Program-made: the position numbers and the translations under genes | The notes under the pieces: model-generated | Seen by the model: only the letters and a program-made list of their open reading frames with translations | Database searches by the model: none | What the model was told of the DNA's origin: nothing | Shown: piece after piece, positions 35,649 through 48,608 of the stretch | Numbering within the stretch: position 1 is the first letter of the stretch | Layout: the number at the start of each line of letters is the position of its first letter | Source: Pocillopora damicornis | Taxonomy: Eukaryota | DNA length: 64,000 nt | Reading direction: 5' to 3' | Assembly: GCF_003704095.1 (NCBI RefSeq) | Contig: NW_020845874.1 | Coordinates: forward strand, 248,001-312,000

Positions 35649-38600
35649 ATGAGGTTACTTTTCCTTATTTTTGTGATAGCCTGGTTTCATCCATCGGTTT
35701 ATTCAGGTAAGATGTTTATCGCTGATATACCTGCTGTCGTAATTAACAATAATTCTACTTTATCTATGACATGGAATGTTTATAAAGCCCAATATTCACT
35801 GCAAAGGGGTTAACGTATAGTTTATTTTTCTTGACATCAAAAAAAATACTAATTGATTTATGGATTCATTGACTGATCTTTTGACGGATTGATTGGCTAA
35901 CCGTAGATGTCGGAAATCCTTCCGAGTCACATAAGTCTGCGTGGAACCTAAAACAGGTCAACAGGATCCAGTTTTGTGTTCACACCACTCATGGTGAAGT
36001 TTTGGATGATTGGAGCATTGCATTGTGGTGAACAGTCCTATTCGATCGAGTCTTGTTGTTCTTACGCCAGTATTTCACATTTTAAATACAGATCTTTGTT
36101 CAATGTTTCACATCCTCGTTAATAGTCGTCATAATCTTCAAGATGTGAGAATGTTTTCATCTTCTGTTTTCTTTTATTTCAGCTCCGTTTGACGTTCGCA
36201 TTGGAAGAGGTAAAGATTGCTCACATTTGGTTCAATGTGTGTAATTAAGTGGAATAATTTGATAATATTACATTCACGATAACTTGGTTTTTCTTTATTG
36301 TACCTTCCTTTGCTTTCATTGTTTTTCAAACTTATGAAGATCGTGTCTTTAACGCAGGGCTTGCACTAAGACTTCATAGAAGGCAGGTTGCATATCAAGG
36401 TGAGCAATTATCTTGGGTTGTATTTGAAAGTAAACGTGACATCCGATTGGTAAATTATCATTTATCGTCGTTTGTGAACAGAAGCAAACCAGTAGTTCTT
36501 ATGTTTATTTCAAGAAATTATTTCTCGTATTATTTTTCATAGGATATCCAGGTTATCCAGAGTACACGTCTACCACGTCACAACAGACATTCAACCAGAA
36601 TGTTGCAACACAGCAGACAGGCGTCACATCTTCACGTAAGTACAGCCTTTCTTTTGCTTGTTTGATCAGGAGGAATTTCGACCTCCTTAGAAATTTGTAA
36701 AACCACAGTCGGAAATGCGTTAAGACAGCTTATGTCTTTGGTTTATATTTTCTTCTTCTTCTTACATATTTTAAACATTGCTTTTGTTTTGTAGCATTTC
36801 AGCTTTTAACAGTAGATCTTAAAAAAAATTCACACATTTTCAACCCGGAGGCTTCACACAACTGATGCATATTCAGAATTATGGACACCCTTAAAAACTA
36901 GTAGGAAGCTTTTAGACTATCACAAACACTTTTATAACGAGATTTATCTTGAGTTGCTTTTTAAAATAGAAACCTTGAGCTCAGCTGATTTGAACGGCAG
37001 TCCCGGAGCGACGGTTGCCTCAACTCCGACAACGCAGACAGGACAACAGCAACTAGCAACCCAAACTGGTGCTCGGGTTGTCCCAGTTCAGAACATCTAT
37101 CACACTTCCTATTCTTCTTTGTCAGCTGCTGAAAATTCATATCTTAAAAACAGCTCTTCTGCGCAAGATGTGACACAATCATCAGGAAATTCATACAAAA
37201 ACAGTTCAGCAGCTCCAGTTGCCACAAATTCAACCCTTGGCGACAGTTACCCTGTATACTATGTGTCAAGCTATCAAGAGCCAACTATACAGCGGCCGAT
37301 TTCACAACCTACATCAAATGCAACGACAAATCCGCCTTCTTCCTCATCTACACTAATAACTTCATCATCAGCACGTAATAAAAATAATTATCCAGTATAC
37401 TACGTCACGAGTCCTAACGACGAAAGCCAACAGACACCTGGAATCAGCGATAACAATTCGATCCTCGAGAAATCAACAAAAACCGTCTCTCAAAATAATG
37501 ATACCGATAGTTATCCTATCTATTATGTGAGCAGCTATAACAATGCCACCACTCAGAAAACACCAGCTCAGAATATAACAGCTGGTTCAATCAATGGAAC
37601 TGATACGTCTGACAATTATCCTGTTTACAATGTGGTCAGCCCTGAAACGAGTAAGGACGGTTTAAGAGAACCATCGAATAGCAAGGTTCCCGACTCACCC
37701 GTTACTTATGAAATAATAAATAGCACGTCAACTTCTAAACTGAACGGTAACAATTCTGTTCCTTCTTCAATTCCATTCAATAATACCCAGTCTACAGCTA
37801 GTAGCAGTAACTATCCCTCTGCTTCCACATCAGCGCCGGCATCACCACCAGCAAATAGTGCCTATAACTATTCATCTTATCCTGTGGCTCCTGCTCCCTA
37901 CAGTACAGGCAGCACATCATCCCCTGCAAGTGCTCCTTCTCCAGCAACCTACCAAGGCTACGGAACACCATCAACCTCAGCATATCCAGCGCCAGCGCCA
38001 GCTCCATATCCTGTGCCAAGCTATTATGGCTACTCAGCCAGTCAACCATCTGCATCACCATCAACAGTTCAGTCACCTGCACAGCCTTCAAATAACTCGT
38101 ACGCTTCCACATCTCAAGCTCCAGCCCCAGCCCCAGCCCCAGCCCCAGCCCTAGCTCCGGCTCCGGCTCCGGCTCCGGCTCCAGCCCCAGCACTAGCTCC
38201 ATCTTCTTCGTCTCCATCGACCATACAGACATCTGCACTGGCTTCAACCAGCTCCTATATTTCCACAAATCAGTCCTCAGCCCTTGCACCTGCTCCAGCA
38301 CCAGCTCCACCTCCAGTTCCTGCTTATCGTCAGACTCCAGCTCCAGCACTGACACCAGCTTCAGCTCCAGCTCCAGCTTCAGCTTCATCTGCATCTTCCC
38401 CTCAAATCACCGGCGTGTCATCTTCTCCTCCTCCTCTTTCATCAGAAGCCGAGTCCTCCTATTCTTCAGCTGGAGATCAGACGTCTTCTTCTGTTCAAGT
38501 CTTGAACACTCCTACCTCCCTTTCTAACCTGAGCTCACAAGAAACTCTCAACTCAGAATACGAAAACGCATCATATGTCATCGCCACCCCTCCTGAGAAA

Positions 38601-40174
38601 GAAACGATTATGTTTCTTCCTTCTCCTTCTTTTCCCCTGTCTTCACAAGCCACAAAATCAGCAAGTTCTAAAAACGCAAAAAGTTCGTCATCCAAACAAA
38701 TGAATCAACCATCTCTGTTAAATGCCACTATTTCTAAACCCCCAGCTCTAGCCAATACAACAGAGATCACTGCCAATCCCACTTCTAAACCACAAGTGCC
38801 TCCACCGGCTATAAACAATACCAACATGCAACAAACCTCAAATGCTTCGCTGTCAGTCGTGCCCCAGAACATCAGTTTTCCTGCTTTCAGAAATATGACG
38901 GACATGTCTAACACATCTTTTGGTGAACCTAGTTATAGCCCTCTGCCAGCTCCAACAGACGGACCAATAATCGAGATACCATTATCTCCTGAGGATCAAT
39001 TTCATTCGCCTTCGGTAGTCAAGACGAAACCGCCTCCATCGCACTTACCGACAAAGCCTCCCCCTGCGGCTCATTCTGTGCTAGTCACGACAAAACCTCC
39101 TGCGGCTGTTGGAGCTCATGCAACTGGCAAACATAAGGCGAATGAGTTGGGCTTTGGCGACAAATATTTAGGTATGAAAATTTTGCTCCTATAACTTCAT
39201 CTACCTTTTTTTCGGAATTTTTATTATGTTTTTGGGTTTTTACAGCCCCTAAAAATAAACGTGCTTGCCATAGGAACGTAATATTCGACGATATACTTTG
39301 TAAGGCGGAGATAAAAGTTTTTTATGGAGTATATATATGTCTCTTTTTTTAGATAGGTAAACCGTCAGGTCTTTTGACTTTATACTGTTTGTCGATTTTA
39401 TTAGAATTATTCAGACAAATTTGCTATAGTAGTTCTTTTTTTTTTGATAAAGGATTGCAATGAAAAGAGCGGCAAGCACAAAATAATAGTGAAAAAATCC
39501 AATCTAAATGCCTCTATGAATTTTTGTTTTATTCTTTGGTTTCTACAGCCTCTCAAAATAAACGTGCTCGCCATAGGAACGTAATATTCGACGGAATCGC
39601 CGGAGACAGTCAATGTAAGTATTTTAAGAAAACAAAATTGAGACAGTAAGAGAACTTTCTTCTCAAATTTGTTCTCAAATAAGCTTTGTGCATGGGTTAG
39701 AGTAATAACCATGGACGATTTGCAGTCAAACAATATGACAGTTCCTCTTGGTTTAAGAGTGATAACCTTGATGTGGTTCTCTCGAGTCGAATAATCTCGT
39801 TCTTACAGTCACACTTAAGGATTCGCGAGCATTTCCATTCCTCGTCCTGACATATTCATTACCATATGTCCACATCGATTCTTTTCCTTTCGTGCAGAAG
39901 AAAATCCTTCTCTCCCCAACACCTCATAGATTGGCATTAGAGTAGTACTAGGGCGCCATATAAGTTCCATTGCCATGTTTAATCCGTGATATACAGAGTG
40001 ATGCACATACAGTGTGTCCATCTCAAATTCCTTTCGTCCGCATTTTTGTTATAGTAAATAAACACAAACTTTCTTTTCATCCTATCAGCCTTCAGCAACT
40101 ATCAAGTATTCAGTCAGCATGATGTATTCTTCCCAAGAAATGGTAGGAAACGAAGAAATGTACCCGTTACTTAA
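35649..40174 (+). CDS. Secreted Ser/Thr/Pro/Ala/Tyr-rich mucin/extensin-like protein with a C-terminal RHRNV peptide module (~875 aa). Exons 35649-35706, 36183-36209, 36358-36399, 36543-36635, 36970-39171, 39246-39299, 39549-39614, 40089-40174
   Basis: Signal peptide MRLLFLIFVIAWFHPSVYS. All introns are phase 1 and GT/AG-bounded. The large exon matches the 746-aa ORF, with (AP)n tracts, many N-x-S/T sequons and YP[VI]YYV repeats. The tail reads KRARHRNVIFDGIAGDSQSFSNYQVFSQHDVFFPRNGRKRRNVPVT*. Confidence 0.8.
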
Positions 40175-41802
40175 ACCTGGTGACTGAAAAGTGTGGATGA
40201 TTTACCGCAGGTCAAACGCAGGAACAAGTATTTTCAATGGGAATCTTAAATGCTCAAAAGCAACCGCCACGTTTGCAAAGACGTAGAAAATAAGCATTGT
40301 AAATAACATTTCTCATAATATATGTTTATATATCTCTTCCAGTATTCTAAAGCGAATCCGGGATCTGATTGGATGCAGTCCCAGCTATTTATAAGCTCAG
40401 AGAGCGGAAAAAAACTCAGGTTTTCGCTAATAAACATTTAGTAATAGTCACTACTAACCCGCTTTTGGAATACAGTACTTGAGAGAAAAATGGGAAAAAC
40501 TTAAAAAGTTTCTTTCGATTTCAGTTCTCTTCCTGATTAGAGCTAGGGAGAAAAAATTAATTCGAAAACGTTTCGGTAATATAATTCTATGTTTTGAGTC
40601 ATTGTCACCAAAGGAATTTGACGACTAACAGCATAACTCTATATATGTTTATTCCGAAATCTTACTGTTCAACGATTTTACGAATGTTAAGATATCAATG
40701 AAGCAAATTATTTTCGTAGCAACCGTTAAAGTTGAAACACATTCAATGGTAAATTCTGATTCATGAAGCACTTTAACCAAGTGCTTCCTTGGGACGTGTA
40801 GACTGTAACAAAACTCTGTTCATCTTTATCAAGATACTCTGAATGTAAAAGATGAATTATCTGTTCCGAAATGATGTATTTCTCTGAACAGATGTTAGCA
40901 AATGTATAACCTGTACAAGACGATCTCAGTAAATCCCTCATTACATTAGAATCTCGTCTATGGCTGCCAAACCCCTATAATATATTCCATTCTGCTTATC
41001 GAGAAGATTCTGCTAATCAAAAATTCAGGGGAAATTTTCCTGTCCCATAAATGAGCTTCACTCATAGACAAAATTTAATTGTTTCAACATTTTAAGTTCT
41101 TCCTTTTTCGATTGCGCCACATTGGTTAACCCATGCATTTCCTGGTCATTAAAGTTGTGATATATTTGAACCAGTCTCCATAAGTAACAAAATAAGGTTG
41201 TTTATTCTATCTCCCTTTGTCAGAAATTTGATATGTACATGTATACATAGTTCAGACATCACTTGTTGTGGCCACGATTATAACTCATTCATATCAAGCG
41301 ATTCGTAGCTTCTTCTTTAATGTTTCCCTGTAGGCAAGACAGTTCAAAATATATTAAAATATGTACTTAAATCAATGTTGTGACAACCATACATCACCAA
41401 TCTTAAACGCAGAGTTTTCTGTGTTTGATGTTAGGTTTAAAAATTGGGGAGTATTACTCGGATATCCTTCAGTTTTATCTGGGAGATTTAAGTCACGGGA
41501 CACGTTTAGTCCAATCGGGCGCGAGAAAAAATATTTCTTGTATCATGATGGATTTTATCTTAGAGGTTTATTTATAACCTTGTTAGAGGTAGTATTCTCT
41601 TGGTATGTGACGTTAGTCAATTCTATATCATTATATTTCACTCATTATTGTATTTATGGTTGTACACCGTCTGGTTTCTTTATCGTACTTAATTGATTCA
41701 CGTTACAACCTATTCATTTCCCCCCTAATCTTAAAAAAGATAAATAGAGGAAAAGGGGGGAGTTCCAAGTAGGAGAATCTAAAACCAAGTGGCAACTTTT
41801 TA

Positions 41803-44800
41803 TTACCCAGTTTTTGTCTCCTTCTCTTCCGCTGATCTTTTGTTGTGGTTAACCAAAATGTGTTGCCTTGTGAGCACCGTGCTGCTTCCGCCTGCAGAAA
41901 AGAGATAGCCACAATGTTGCGTTAGGCACTCAACAAAAGCAGAGTGCAATAAGTGTACTACGCGTAACAACCGAATAAGTACTGAAAGATTATTTGATGA
42001 TTATTTCAAAAGCGAGCGTTAATTTTGACTTGGTTATGCACATCACGGGATAACTGTTTTACTCAAACCGAATATACTGACTGTCATGTTCATGTTGCAA
42101 TCAATCGCCTAAAAAAGGACCTCCAGCTTAAATCATAGTCAAATAGCAAGTGATGGTTAAGCCAAACAGAACTCTAGAATTTCATTTTGGATCTAGTTAT
42201 CCTATAAGATCTTACACAACATCAGGTCTACCACTGCCGTCAACCAATCAGACGAAGAATGATAACCATTGGTGTGTGGTCGCCCTTAGTTCGGTTCAGT
42301 CGAGGCAGTGTATTCTCACGTATTCTCTTTGCTCTGATTGGCCAATCTGGTTAGGTTGGTTTTATTGTTACTACACCAATCAAAAAGCGCTCTCACATAC
42401 TTTGTATAAATGCAGATTTGTTTTCTTACCGTAAGGATCTCCACCAACAGAATCAAAATAAACATTGCGGTGTCTTGCAGCGTAGTTTAACCTTGCTGTC
42501 GACAGAATCATCATTATTCACACCAATGTTAATAGTGAATTTCATCAATTAGCGGAAGAGGGAGCCAGGAGTGGCATAAATACGTTTTTTATCACCTCTG
42601 AATGGTTCAGGCCAACATCTAGTTAACTTAAAAGCAGTAACTGCACAAATCCCTTACCAATGCCATCTCTCTTCACGGCTTCTGGGACGTTTGAAGGACT
42701 GGATTGAACCGCTGGATAATATTGACTGGTGGCTCCGGCTATAAAAAAAAGAAGGACTATAAGATAAGGACTAATGTTCATTCTCAAGGCTTTGATCGTT
42801 AGTTGGCTTTTTCTAAAACGTTAAACACAACTCACATGAATCTAACTGTATTTGTATCACCATGACAACTCAATCGAAAGTGAGATTTATTGCTTAATAC
42901 TCCCCTTGAATTATTGAATTACTTAAGTACTCACGTGCTGGTGATAATTCTCCTAGTGAAACAGATCTCCTCTTTTTGTGATTAACGGCAATATGTGAAC
43001 GAGACAGAACAGGGCTACTGTGACCTGTTTGTAAAAGGGGTAAGAAATACGAGTGATATTTAACTCTAGACGATAATTATGCTTATGATATATTGTGGTA
43101 CCCTTCAAATGATGTTTTTCGATGATGCAACTTATTTTTTGACTTGAAGTGGCCCCTCGGGAAATGATAACACGTCTGACTGACACTATTCGTTATTCTG
43201 ATGAAGAATGAATAGACGACCCCACGAAGAATCCACTTAAGCATATATCATGGCACACAAATGGCAACCTCTAGTCCTTCTCTGAAATTGGCAGTGATCT
43301 AAAATCAATTTTAGAGGGCAGTACCTATAGGGTAAGGTTAACAATGCCTTTATCACCTATTTTTAGATTCTTGCAACATTTGTTTGGAAAGTTTTTAGGG
43401 CTAAAATGTACGCCTTTTACCACCAAATGAAGACTGTAGTTAAGTTCGTATTGTACCTACCATATGGATCTCCTCCAACAGTGTCGAAATACACATTGCG
43501 ATGTCTGGCGGCTTGATTTAGTTGTTCTGCAGCATTAAATAAACGCAAAATGTATCAGAGGAACTAAAAAAAGTTCGATACCGCCTCTATAGTTATGAAA
43601 AGCTTTTGCCCTTCATATCATATTAATAATTTACGCCTATACATTAAGAAGGCCCCGTCTTGCGAATTCTTACATTAAGACTCGTCCTGAACCTGAGATG
43701 GGTTTCTGAAAACGTTTCTCGCCTATTTGTGATTTTTCTTTCGCTGCAAAAATCAAGTGACAAAGATCAGACAGCAATATAAGCGAAAAAGGCCTACAAT
43801 CATACCAATAGTGTATCTTTTGTCATCAGCTGGGTGTCTTCCTCCGGTTATTTGCTCTTCAAAGAAAGCGGAAGGGAGCTGACTACCATCAACAGCTTGA
43901 GCTAAAAGGGTAAATAAATAGAATTCAAATTTCTAAAAAAAAATTAGTACTATGTCGATTAGTTCTCTGATCTGAAGAGTGTGCCAAGCGATTTAAGGAA
44001 CTATGCCCAATGACGAAATTGAGAGCGAAGATTTTCCCGTCTCTTAATTTCATCTCCCCAGTTTTAATCATATACGCTTAAAATCATTTACATGTATAAA
44101 ACCGATTCACCTGATTCGGGTTGAGTGAGTGATCTCTTTTTCTTGTGATTGACAGCAATATGTGAGCGAGACAGAACTGGACTACTGTGACCTGTTTCAT
44201 GGGTGCAAAAAAAATGCAGTATTGATGATAAAGCAACTTTATTTCATTTCGTTTAGTAGTTTTGAAGAAATAATATACCTGAGAAACTTTCTCACCGTTT
44301 TTAGCTCAATACTCATAGTTGGTTCAATTTAGCAGTTTAAATTGAAAGTGATTCACTCACCATACGGGTCTCCACCAACGGTATCGTAGTAAACATTACG
44401 ATGTCTCGCCGCTAGGTTAAGTTGTTCTGAGGAAAAGTTTAAGTCAAAAGATATCATATCGTAAAGATAAGAGATGTAATAGTAAAGAGTTATTGTATGG
44501 CAATATCAAAGATTTTTAGGTACCAATTGTGTATCTCTTGTCGTCATTTGGATGCCTTCCTCCAGTGATTTGCTCCTCAAAGAAGGCTGAAGGGAGTGGA
44601 TTTCCAATGGTCTGACCTTCAAAAAGAATAAACGTGTTTCAGGGTATTTGGATGTTGCAATTGTCGTGATTTACGTGATTCGAACTTACTTGCTATCAAG
44701 CTTGACCCATTTTCGTTTAATTTCTTGGTCAGACGAGCATGAATTGTTCAAACGTCTACATGCAGCTTCTACTCTCATGGAACGTACGACGAATTTCCTC

Positions 44801-45234
44801 ATGTTTAAGGCACAATGATATACAAAATACCTACCGATATTTGCAGGGTCCGCTATTCCACTTTTCTTAAATTCATTCATTCCATTTTGACCGGCGTAGG
44901 GTATTTCCAAACCTGAATAAAATGATTTTTTATGAGCACGTAGTTTTTCAAAAAGGAGCTCGGTAATCGGAATAACAGAATCATGCAATTGAAATGATAC
45001 CATCTTCTGCTGTGTATCAACATCAGTCTAATAAAGATCTAAGAAATTTTGAAGTTAACCTTTACTGAATTGAATTTATAAAAGAATTAAAATGAAATAA
45101 ATCTCAATTCTCGAGATTTTGGATTTTCATCTTCGTCCAGTGACTGCATTTTGTCTGGCATTTCTTCCCTTCGTACCTTTGCAAAAGGCAACAGCTCCAC
45201 ACAATATGCTGATAATGGGTATAAAACTCCCCAT
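41803..45234 (-). CDS. Secreted multi-copy peptide precursor (261 aa). Exons 45234-45177, 44616-44524, 44426-44361, 44191-44111, 43901-43806, 43526-43461, 43024-42935, 42738-42658, 42495-42430, 41891-41803
   Basis: Signal peptide MGSFIPIISILCGAVAFCKG. Nine phase-1 GT/AG introns, with a three-exon unit repeated three times. Differences between repeats are mostly at third codon positions (TCA/TCC, GCC/GCT, GAG/GAA, ATC/ATA, CAT/CAC), which fixes the frame. KR and KKKR/KKRR/KR sites flank each repeat. Confidence 0.88.
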
Positions 45235-46522
45235 TTTGGCCTACCTGTTAGTATTGGAAATGAAAATGAAGTTAATCTTTGAGGTCAAAAGCTATTTCTT
45301 TGGTTGCCCCCCCCCACCCTCTTTTCGCTCACCCTTAACTTAGTCTTCTATCTTTATTTCTGTTTTTTTTCATTGCCACTAATTTGCCCCATGAAATCAT
45401 CTGTCCTTGACAGATACCAATCTTTAAAAAACAATATGACAAACGTACGATTATTATTATATGAAGTATGTTAATTTTGATTTGAAAATCGTATCTCCAA
45501 CTTTAGTAACCAGATAAGGCCCTTAATAGTTTCCCCGAGTTGCGTAACCGTCCAGTGTGTGAATCTGCTTCTTAGTAATCAGTCCTGTCGGTAAGTTAAT
45601 GGCTAAAAAATCTAGCAAACACTTCCATAAATTATTTAACATCCTTGGTAATTTAACACACAGCACTTAAGTTAGAAGAAATTGCCTGTAACCATACACC
45701 GATGTCTGCTTTCCTTTATGAATTTATTATCGTTTCAGCGACGTTTTTCCGAGTTTCAGACGGATCTATTAGTCCCCCATTTACTTATATGTTGTGTTAC
45801 GATGGTTTTCTTTGCATAAACACAACAGTACCAGACATACGGGTAATTTGCTTATCAAGTAGTCACTGGTAAGAACTGAGGTCTGCAAACATACAGGAAT
45901 AGACCCATTCAGGAGCTTTAAATATGGATCCATAATTTCGATCTTCTCCAGGCTGTTTCGCATATACTTATTTCCATAATGAGCTTTGAAATTAGGATCT
46001 CATCGGCGAAAAATAGGGGTCTTTCTATCCATCATGAACAATTCTTACTACGGAGAGTATATCTCACCAAGCAAAACTAGAACAACCCTGTTGCTGTAGT
46101 TCAATTTGACCATTCACCAAATACAATTCATTTCGAGATTGTACTTAAGAATACAGATATCAAGTCTTGATCAGCATAACCTCTTCAAACAGACCAGCTC
46201 CTCAAATTGTTTTACCCTGTACTAAGCAAATAACTGGCGGAGAACATATCGCTGTTTATAGACTTAGTCTCCGGGATGCCGTTATTTTTATTTCCTCCCG
46301 TACCTCTACGATTTGTGATTAAAAAACAAAATATCCCATGGAGGCAAGAGATTAGGTCTGAATGAATAAAAGTAAAATAGTAAAACACCATGTGTAATTA
46401 ACGGCCATAACAGCATTTATAAAATTCGGACAGTCCAATATTTACAAGAATCTAGTTACCGATTCAATTTAGATTCCTTCTCAATGACAAACAAAAATTT
46501 GAATTCTTCTGCTAATCACTTA

Positions 46523-46891
46523 CCAAGTGTTGTCCGTTTCAAAATTGTAATCAGCGAATTCCAACTAATTTTATGTTAGGATTTCACACGAGAAGAAACT
46601 CGTCCAAAGATCTGTTGATGCTCCAAGGCGGACCGTGTCGATGTTGGTTTCATCATGGTGGCTTACCACAAGCAAGCTTTCTTATTGGTTGTGCCTTAAA
46701 CTCCTGTCAAACAGGTACCACCTATGATGGGTCAATAATATCAATATCCTTGTTTGAAAATGACGTGTTTGTAAATCTTTCGTACACTGATTTTCTCTCC
46801 TCAATCCCTCTCGTTCTCTCTAAGGGGTAAATAATTTCTTGAAATCTAAACTTTGTAACTTTCGCTCGCAGCTACTTTCCAATTTTATAAA
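46523..46891 (-). promoter_or_regulatory. Putative TATA box and non-coding first exon of the peptide-precursor gene
   Basis: Minus-strand TATAAAA at ~46883-46889 and donor TTG|GTAAGT at 46523/46522, upstream of the acceptor before the ATG at 45234. Confidence 0.35.
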
Positions 46892-48608
46892 CTGTTGTTT
46901 CCTATCGTTTGTACAGTTAATACAGATAATTTTCGGTCGACTGTTCAGTTGTGTTTCGAGCAGTAAGACACTTCGTTAGGTTGCCTCTCTCTTGACGCTA
47001 TACCACTAGTGAAAAAAAAAGTATTAATAACGTTTCAAAACTTAATAAGGTTCACACTTTCAAAAAATTACGAAGTTGACCATAGTACTACGTTTAATGT
47101 GGTTTGACCTTAGGGCAATAGTTTTGACGTCCTTCTTCTGATGGCGTTTCGATTTTCTCGGAAAAAAAGATTGTAGGAGCTATGAAACGTTTTTTGCATT
47201 TTCAAAACAGTAAAATACATTTGTTTTCCTCTTTTAAGGGGTTGGTGCATCCCCATCAGGTTCCTTTTTGTTTTGTGTTTTTCTTTATTCGTTGTAGTTT
47301 CCTCACATGGACGATAATTTTGAACGACGGTACATGATCCTCTAAGTTAGATAAATGTTGCAAACTGAATCCTAAAGTAATGCAGACTGAGATCATTAAA
47401 TTATGCCTCCTGTAAATGGATCATTATTTTCCTGGAGTACGTGAAACAATCCTATCCGCTTTAGAATGAAGCTGGGTCAGAACCCGCAAAAGTAAGCATG
47501 AAATACGATTTTTTTGTCCTTAACCCACTAAACAAAAATGCACTTGGGGAGCATGCATGCAACTTTTCTGTTTTGGTTTTGCTTTGTTTTTGTGCTTGTT
47601 TTGTGTTTTACATTTATTTTTATTTGCATCATTCTTATAAAAAATCTAGAACTAGTTTGGGTTTACGCACATTGTAATATCCGGTCTTGAAACAATGAGA
47701 GCGTAAAAAGTACGCTTGGATCAATGATACTTGATAAAGCGGTTAAGTAATTAAGTTCCTATATATTTACACTACTTGTGTCTTTATTGAATTTTTTCCA
47801 AAAGTAAAAAGAACTTAAGTAAAACAGTTTCTGTCCTAAGTCAAAGAAATATTTCCTGAGAAAGAGGTACGTCAATCCTTGTAAAAGATGGAATTTTCTT
47901 CCAAATGAAATATAGAGATCTTATAAAACAATGTTTCATCCTGGTATCTAATGCACAGGCTTTTAAGAAATATGCATATGACCAAAGGACCAACAACCTA
48001 AACTTATTCGCACAAACCAAACCAAGCGAAAATATTCAAAATAAACCAATCTTTATTTCAAGTCGTACTTTATGTAAAGAACTAAACACCCGTTTATTAG
48101 TGTCTTTTGTTTTTGCCCTTTGGGATTTTTGTAGGTTAGTTCGTCGTGCGTGCGGAATATATTTTAGCGTGTTAGTCGAGCAATTTATTGCAATATATTC
48201 GTTAGTGTCTAAAGGACGTGTAAGCCTTTTCGGGTCAGTTTTTTTTGTTCGCTTGCCATTTCCAAGCGATCATTTTTCGCCCTACGGCAGCCAGATTTCA
48301 CGTTACAGTTTGTCGCCGCTCCAGTGCAGTCTTTTCCCAGCTCCCAACAAATGGAAGTGTCGCTTTGGTCCAACTTTCCGTTGCATTTTAGTTCACTTTG
48401 CAACGTTCTTTTCTTTGTTTGCATTTTAGTTTTAACCGCTTTGAACAACCGCAACTACAACATCGTTTCTTAAATAAAGCGCGTTAATACAATGCTGGAG
48501 TGTTTGGAGTGTTTAGTCCACTGTTGGAAGTTATAATTTATCTCAGGTTGCAATGTGTCTAAAATTCAAGCTTGACGAGAGCGTTAAAAGAGCAGCGGTA
48601 TTGTTAAA

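Follow-up and report, generated by a model that had tools for sequence, protein, structure and literature searches.

A coral gene of small exons encodes a putative multi-copy secreted peptide precursor from an ancient cnidarian family

Introduction

What does a coral secrete from a gene so finely divided that none of its coding exons reaches 100 nucleotides (nt)? The question is raised by a stretch of 64,000 nt from Pocillopora damicornis (NCBI RefSeq assembly GCF_003704095.1, contig NW_020845874.1, positions 248,001 to 312,000 of the forward strand; this whole stretch is the window, and all positions below are its own), in which an earlier note, made from the letters alone, had placed at 41803-45234 a hidden prohormone-like gene releasing three near-identical peptides of ~41 amino acids (aa). 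The answer we consider probable is that this minus-strand gene encodes a secreted peptide precursor processed by convertases, and that it represents a new and ancient cnidarian family. To our knowledge, very few peptide families are common to all cnidarian classes, and those few anchor the picture of how peptidergic signalling originated. Here is a module that is near-invariant across the named members of five cnidarian groups, yet unnamed and functionally unstudied.

Gene structure and expression

Translation of the minus strand of 41700-45300, within a region (40000-47000) free of N runs, gives an exon chain that opens with an ATG at 45234 and a hydrophobic N-terminus and goes on to three near-identical units. 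The span 41803-45234 comprises 11 exons and ten junctions, one more than the nine first claimed, with GT-AG borders and phase 1 throughout, a uniformity far beyond chance. The segments of coding sequence measure 58, 78, 93, 66, 81, 96, 66, 90, 81, 66, 85 and 34 nt; every coding exon is indeed shorter than 100 nt, as had been reported, although at 34-96 nt these are small exons and not the micro-exons, in the strict sense, of the earlier description. What had been seen from the letters was correct as to the chain of exons, the three repeats, the dibasic flanks and the signal-like character of the N-terminus, and the three peptide strings quoted at the time equal the translation exactly.

RNA contigs from four polyA or complementary DNA libraries, belonging to four different studies, were aligned to 41760-45280. 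All ten junctions of the span, whose predicted existence called for such a check, are present in each of the four runs with CT..AC ends on the plus strand, and the contigs list no exon-skipping joint over 41760-45280. RNA runs of several studies contain 15-23% of the words sampled from the 3.5-kb stretch, which is approximately its exonic share, and in RNA of adult holobionts the contigs reach a fairly high k-mer depth, 10-130, though this measures expression poorly. The gene is real, spliced and expressed.

The same contigs redraw both ends of the gene. They fit the window only between 41806 and 45245, and the consensus sequences of both onward ends map uniquely, to 41297-41326 and 46525-46554. 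On the 3' side, contigs of all four runs fit exon 11 (41807-41891, minus strand; donor ACTGG, then gtaata) as far as 41806 and then diverge to 41297-41326. Because exon 11 is spliced at 41807/41806 to a terminal exon starting from 41327, the TAA at 41803-41805, previously taken for the stop, is intronic. The real stop is a TGA at 41294-41296, and the true open reading frame (ORF) has 894 nt and 297 aa, with the C-terminus ...KTGETLKKKLRIA (ending ETLKKKLRIA). The terminal exon (41180-41327, minus strand, downstream end approximate) holds the last 11 codons, the TGA and the 3' untranslated region (UTR); beyond the loose-end mapping, a TLKKKLR tail is kept in orthologues, and the 3'UTR block flanking an AATAAA at 41201-41206 is kept in Desmophyllum. 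On the 5' side, loose ends of 101-123 nt at 45245 in the four runs have a consensus that is exactly 46525-46554, and therefore a 5'UTR exon (46524-46647, minus strand, upstream end approximate), with a GT donor after 46524, joins exon 1 at 45244, which brings the junctions represented in RNA contigs of the four studies to twelve. For both outer exons of this gene, as for the splicing of its neighbour, the evidence is loose-end mapping together with conservation in orthologues and database proteins derived from transcripts.

Between these ends the minus-strand exons follow in order. Exon 1 (45177-45244) contributes 10 nt of 5'UTR, the ATG and the signal peptide MGSFIPIISILCGAVAFCK, as indicated by RNA contigs, translation, the hydrophobic core and an in-frame TAG 9 nt 5' of the ATG. 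Exon 2 (44835-44912; junctions 44910/45175 and 44614/44833 in all four runs) encodes an N-terminal region with the motif PYAGQ...FKKSGI, which is common to the long medusozoan forms discussed below. The exons of the units that follow are placed by translation and RNA contigs and, for part A of units 1 and 2, also by the ratio of non-synonymous to synonymous substitution rates (dN/dS). Unit 1 consists of exon 3 (44524-44616), its part A, with the conserved spacer LPSAFFEEQITGGRHPNDD, KR and YTI; exon 4 (44361-44426), the 66-nt, phase 1-1 core QLNLAARHRNVYYDTVGGDPY; and exon 5 (44111-44191), with the tail HSSPVLSRSHIAVNH, KKKR and the start of the next spacer. Unit 2 consists of exon 6 (43806-43901), its part A; exon 7 (43461-43526), a 66-nt core in which 22 of 22 aa are the same as in Desmophyllum; and exon 8 (42935-43024), with the tail and KKRR, both of whose flanking junctions are in all four runs. 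Unit 3 consists of exon 9 (42658-42738), its part A, with a different spacer, KR and DGI; exon 10 (42430-42495), a 66-nt core; and exon 11, which carries the tail, NKR and SAEEKETKTG.

Upstream, at 46575-46658 on the minus strand, an ATGATG in good Kozak-like context (gccaccATGATG) opens an ORF of 27 codons whose TAA lies within the 5'UTR exon. These ATGs are just 5' of the starts of the RNA contigs and may form an upstream ORF if transcription begins further upstream.

The precursor protein

The N-terminus of the 297-aa product is signal-like (Kyte-Doolittle hydropathy 2.3-2.6 over residues 3-18, small residues at -1/-3, cleavage sites 18/20), and there is no membrane anchor, the maximum 19-aa hydropathy past residue 25 being 0.23. 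KR stands before each of the three units, and KKKR, KKRR and NKR after the first, second and third, respectively; the units end ...VNH-KKKR or ...VNHN-KR, with no Gly beside the basic residues. The predicted products would be 41-42-mers of ~4.6 kDa if the KR before YTI or DGI is cut, and 76-95 residues long (spacer plus module) if it is not; the 41-42-mers would be near neutral, with a charge of 0.1 to 1.0 at pH 7 and an isoelectric point of 7.1-8.5. An AlphaFold model from an alignment of 16 sequences (mean predicted local distance difference test 45.7, predicted template modelling score 0.14) contains, beyond the signal peptide, no structure other than one short helix where each unit starts and another, of four residues, in the C-terminal tail. 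Disorder is thus predicted for most of the precursor, in keeping with its proposed nature as a source of peptides.

Resemblance to characterised families was sought in several ways. Nine family proteins scanned against Pfam at E up to 1 gave sub-threshold noise only and no family match; the profiles of CRH, calcitonin, PTH and secretin-type hormones were equally silent. None of the known cnidarian neuropeptide motifs (GLWamide, RFamide, PRXamide/GPRGamide, RPamide, QITRFamide, HIRamide) occurs in the 297-aa product. The best score in the ESM Atlas, 0.77, belonged to a bacterial hypothetical protein and is a meaningless match. A Cys-rich toxin of the ShK, Kunitz, defensin-like or SCRiP kind is ruled out, as there are no cysteines past the signal peptide, where the only two Cys of the protein lie. 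The search for a characterised family that the earlier note had called for hence found no Pfam family and, among named relatives, only uncharacterized or hypothetical proteins; its description of a peptide unlike both the Cys-rich toxins and the short amidated neuropeptide families of cnidarians (PMC7523074) holds.

How long have the units existed side by side, and what has held them together? Over 40 peptide codons, units 1 and 2 differ by 19 synonymous and 2 non-synonymous changes (Nei-Gojobori), giving a near-saturated dS of 1.76, a dN of 0.022 and a dN/dS of 0.013. In unit 3 synonymous sites are saturated and dN is 0.23-0.27. The introns, compared in six pairs, show no better alignment than shuffled sequence does. 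The synonymous-biased divergence and unalignable introns noticed at the outset are therefore both genuine, and from near-saturated dS, low dN and unalignable introns together it follows that the duplication is old and the peptide sequence tightly held. The 21 codons 5' of the unit (LPSAFFEEQITGGRHP.DDKR) give a dN of 0.042, a dS of 1.58 and a dN/dS of ~0.03. Variants in the RNA are once more consistent with purifying selection on the units: the changes 44555 C>T (all four runs), 43849 T>G and 43870 G>C (both in two runs) are synonymous, and 44865 T>G, in one run only, turns K36 into Q within the FKKSG motif. A core-exon search of the coral's own genome (234,350,878 bases, 4,393 contigs) found only the three copies of this gene, at a sensitivity that missed the diverged copy of the neighbour described below.

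A pan-cnidarian family

The range of the family, which the earlier account missed, is its most telling property. When 1.84 billion representative proteins were searched with a profile built from the three core exons, 49 scored at E up to 0.001, with no identified member outside Cnidaria among them. Named members come from Scleractinia (Pocillopora, Desmophyllum, Montipora, Oculina), Actiniaria (Nematostella XP_048584688.1, Exaiptasia, Actinia), Octocorallia (Dendronephthya, Xenia), Scyphozoa (Rhopilema, Sanderia) and Hydrozoa (Hydractinia), and their descriptive names, where the source has any, are 'uncharacterized' or 'hypothetical'. The module consensus is LN.AARHRNVY.D..GGDPY.G.S.VL[ST]R[QS]..., with the invariant core AARHRNVY.D..GGDPY, and in Nematostella and Desmophyllum this core sits in its own exon with the same boundaries. 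A furin-type site (KKKR, RSRR, HRHRR, KHKR) stands after nearly every module in the named members of all five groups, the exceptions being a few long forms in which the protein ends at KKH or KKHK directly at the module. Neither the module motif nor the gene ids of the family were found in the main texts of the literature searched. This is a pan-cnidarian, ancient peptide family, previously undescribed, with no name, Pfam family or functional study.

The family varies in form. The number of units is three in stony corals and two in anemones and octocorals; the Nematostella protein is a two-unit orthologue. The medusozoan proteins are longer (300-460 aa), rich in Q and P, and built of two halves, each with PYLGQ(D/N)L at its start and the module at its end. 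In Actiniaria and Octocorallia each unit ends in Gly plus basic residues (...SSR-GKR, ...HRH-GR, ...TF-GRKKR, ...NR-GKR), whereas scleractinian units have no such amidation signal. Since the signal is present in these orthologues, its absence from corals is a lineage difference and not a family-wide one, and the 'non-amidated' of the original description is right for stony corals and wrong for sea anemones and octocorals, where Gly is followed by KR, R or RKKR and the Nematostella product is recorded as amidated.

Two further features mark subsets of the family. The C-terminal tail TLKKKLRL (41294-41327, minus strand) is kept across Anthozoa (P0002, P0003, P0064, P0067), and in Nematostella, Exaiptasia and some corals it leads into a cluster of cysteines, C.K.CCC, that is missing from the Pocillopora product. 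Long medusozoan-type members (P0005, P0008, P0009, P0039, P0042, P0044, P0074) have in common several conserved elements missing from the hexacoral short forms: a helix AYAEGYKAA(L/I), HTVVERS, and many [KR]S.[IV]P motifs spread along their Q/P-rich sequence.

Processing, likely function and alternatives

Gly followed by basic residues is the classical amidation signal, dibasic sites are PC/furin (proprotein convertase) cleavage signals, and multiple tandem copies are typical of bioactive-peptide precursors. From such features we infer convertase cleavage in the coral, its exact products and a ligand function. The signal peptide would direct a 297-aa polyprotein, which has no other hydrophobic segment, into the endoplasmic reticulum. 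Furin/PC-type convertases would then cut at the multibasic sites after the modules (after KKKR, KKRR and NKR, each followed by S), releasing three products, each with the core AARHRNVY.D..GGDPY and a short amphipathic helix at its start. Cutting at the KR before YTI or DGI would yield the 41-42-mers, and sparing it the products of 76-95 residues. After carboxypeptidase trimming, stony coral products would keep free ...NH or ...HN ends, and those of sea anemones and octocorals would carry an amidated C-terminal residue. The released peptides would most likely act as extracellular ligands, be it as hormone, neuropeptide or paracrine factor.

A published record bears on this scheme. The Nematostella precursor is NVEC200_005559_1.1 in the supplementary mass spectrometry (MS) table of Thiel et al. 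2024 (PMC11087051, Supp. file 1), its printed sequence being the same as P0002 on comparison by eye. Two peptides of 63 and 62 residues are listed there, running from the signal-peptidase site (flanks SA, AI) to ...PIISSR before GKR and annotated as amidated, with -10lgP values of 28.2 and 24.3 and mass errors of 2.2 and 0.5 ppm (PMC11087051). This is weak but specific backing for signal-peptide removal, Gly-basic cleavage and amidation.

Several observations weigh against a released ligand all the same. The two Nematostella peptides fall in the authors' 'Poor' class, with areas of 0 or NA, and leave the internal DDKR-YTI site uncut (PMC11087051); the precursor is not in that study's proneuropeptide list and has no motif match in its Supp. 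file 2 (PMC11087051). The spacer is constrained almost as strongly as the module, which is odd for a linker to be discarded. The long relatives, with their 300-850 aa of mucin-like or Q/P-rich regions, look more structural than hormonal. With an internal KR left uncut in Nematostella and a spacer so conserved (dN/dS ~0.03), the release of exactly 41-mers, as first proposed, is unproven, and the products may instead be those of 76-95 residues.

Might the protein then be structural, a secreted component of matrix or mucus whose module is a motif for interaction, assembly or anchoring and not a released ligand, with basic clusters that bind polyanions or serve only the maturation of a structural protein? 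We regard this as unlikely, though there is a good deal in its favour: the same module ends both the adjoining 851-aa mucin-like protein and the 300-460-aa Q/P-rich proteins of medusozoans, the whole protein is predicted to be disordered, the spacers are conserved too, and the k-mer depth, poor measure as it is, is fairly high. However, tandem units of ~40 aa with a furin-type site after each copy, the Gly-basic amidation signals of two orders and the amidated product in Nematostella MS are all marks of processed peptides and not of matrix proteins. The occurrence of the family in skeleton-less cnidarians goes further and rules out a skeletal-matrix protein, since members are found in anemones, soft corals and jellyfish. 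A very improbable alternative is a regulator of the secretory pathway that binds or inhibits proprotein convertases, in the manner of 7B2 or proSAAS, through the motif PY[LA]GQ...[KR][KR]S.[IV]P. The C-terminal peptide of human 7B2 (SCG5) inhibits PC2 (PMC3412831), and it shares with the family a P-Y-L-(Q)-G-Q-x-L-D ... basic ... V-P pattern following a furin-type site (PMC3412831), visible in the long forms as RRSR then MPYLGQDLDKLGIVRAVP and in the coral N-terminus as IPYAGQNGMNEFKKSGIADP; both are, moreover, disordered secretory proteins. Yet this is a short motif resemblance noticed after the fact, in proteins of otherwise different architecture. Among the nine family proteins scanned at E up to 1 none matches PF05281, there is no PPNPCP motif, several members, those of Nematostella and octocorals, are without the motif, one RNA allele turns the first K of its KK pair into Q, and it is the module, not the N-terminal motif, that is the most conserved part of the family. 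PF05281 also found no match in the coral's own genome, a weak test as the controls were silent as well. Scarcely credible, finally, is the idea that the gene supplies mucus with antimicrobial or defensive peptides cut from a precursor: the product is secreted, multi-copy, His-rich and flanked by dibasic sites, but its peptides are near neutral and not amphipathic-cationic overall, and their near-invariance across Cnidaria is unlike the fast evolution of host-defence peptides.

A secreted precursor of processed peptides therefore remains the reading we favour, and known systems offer it partial parallels. The multi-copy neuropeptide preprohormones of cnidarians (GLWamide, Antho-RFamide, GPRGamide, RPamide, pQSITRFamide, FHIRamide; Koch & Grimmelikhuijzen 2020, PMC7523074) have the same signal peptide, tandem copies with spacers and basic sites, and resemble the sea-anemone and octocoral members in their Gly-basic signals and, for GLWamide and RFamide, the family as a whole in conservation across classes. 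They differ in that the present peptides are ten times longer (36-42 aa or more vs 4-10 aa), number 2-3 copies vs 5-50, have no shared C-terminal motif and are not amidated in the coral, and in that each unit is spread over three small phase-1 exons, with conserved spacers and with long mucin-like or Q/P-rich paralogues. The long, Cys-free, helical hormones of bilaterians (CRH/DH44, calcitonin/DH31, PTH, secretin-type) come closer in dimensions, with ~31-44 aa, an N-terminal or central amphipathic helix, release at basic sites, no disulfide in several and an amidated C-terminus in many; they have no sequence similarity to the family and no Pfam match to it at E up to 1, and the likeness is in kind only.

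If the peptides are ligands, the wider implications are considerable. The neuropeptide survey of scleractinians lists short amidated families only (PMC7523074), and this family is in neither the published scleractinian (PMC7523074) nor the Nematostella (PMC11087051) precursor list; a ligand function would add a long-peptide system to a repertoire thought to be short and amidated. More tentatively, and with rather less than an even chance in our estimate, Anthozoa and Medusozoa may have inherited from their last common ancestor an ancient peptide-signalling system of which the module is the ligand. It would exist in two forms, a precursor that is short and multi-copy and a long protein, mucin-like or rich in Q and P, with a single terminal copy. 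Long peptides and genes split into small exons would explain why such a system has escaped notice. The two forms could then be free and tethered (or locally released) versions of one signal, and a candidate ligand for orphan cnidarian receptors would be at hand; as the published Nematostella library did not include the precursor, it would be a new candidate for deorphanization screens.

Public annotation

The gene called hidden by the earlier note is annotated in GenBank, but wrongly, so that the word was overstated. Its product is the hypothetical protein pdam_00005122 (P0069, 257 aa), found by searching with a full-length orthologue, which agrees with the 297-aa model at 256 of 257 residues and loses 40 residues by skipping exon 8 and stopping at the intronic TAA. 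P0066, a 297-aa protein from Logan transcript contigs, includes exon 8 and the terminal exon and agrees with our model over its full length, with 293 of 297 positions the same. The automatic UniRef name of P0069, 'Zasp-like motif domain-containing', is not supported: the Pfam scan gave no such hit, and this is a secretory protein without PDZ or LIM domain. No Stylophora or Acropora RefSeq protein was among the matches of the full-length, length-limited search, and many matches to the family are short ORF fragments of single exons; the family's small-exon genes may be missed or broken in other coral annotations. Given the faulty model in P. damicornis and the lack of Stylophora or Acropora proteins among those matches, small-exon precursors may be under-counted in coral annotations.

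The neighbouring mucin-like gene

Tail to tail with the module gene, ~1 kb away, lies a convergent plus-strand gene (36954-40174) with a large exon rich in Ser, Thr, Pro and Ala (ORF 36954-39194). A 66-nt, phase 1-1 exon at 39549-39614 (plus strand) reads ASQNKRARHRNVIFDGIAGDSQ and is identical in Desmophyllum, and the last exon, at 40089-40174 (plus strand), reads SFSNYQVFSQHDVFFPRNGRKRRNVPVT, then a stop. Together these last two exons are a diverged copy of the module, ending FFPRN-G-RKRR-NVPVT. An 851-aa protein from transcript contigs (P0085), 97% identical to the big exon, has a signal peptide and ends exactly in the joined sequence, and the Montipora 'mucin-2-like' protein (P0093) has the same ending; both confirm the splice. 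The product is a secreted mucin-like protein of 851 aa with YP[VI]YYV repeats and Ala/Pro-rich runs, and its diverged terminal module with a Gly + RKRR end makes the neighbour a long-form paralogue with one module.

Three RNA contigs of 1.4-4.1 kb extend 1.1-3.9 kb beyond exon 11 of the module gene, far past its AATAAA. Probably the 3'UTRs of the convergent genes overlap and these contigs fuse both transcripts there; the paralogues would then overlap in antisense. In the neighbour, the interval separating the big exon from the 66-nt one holds, at 39228-39281 (plus strand), a second exon-like copy of 54 nt, phase 1-1 (APKNKRACHRNVIFDDIL); it is skipped in P0085 and weakly matched in Desmophyllum, and could be an alternative exon or a decaying duplicate.

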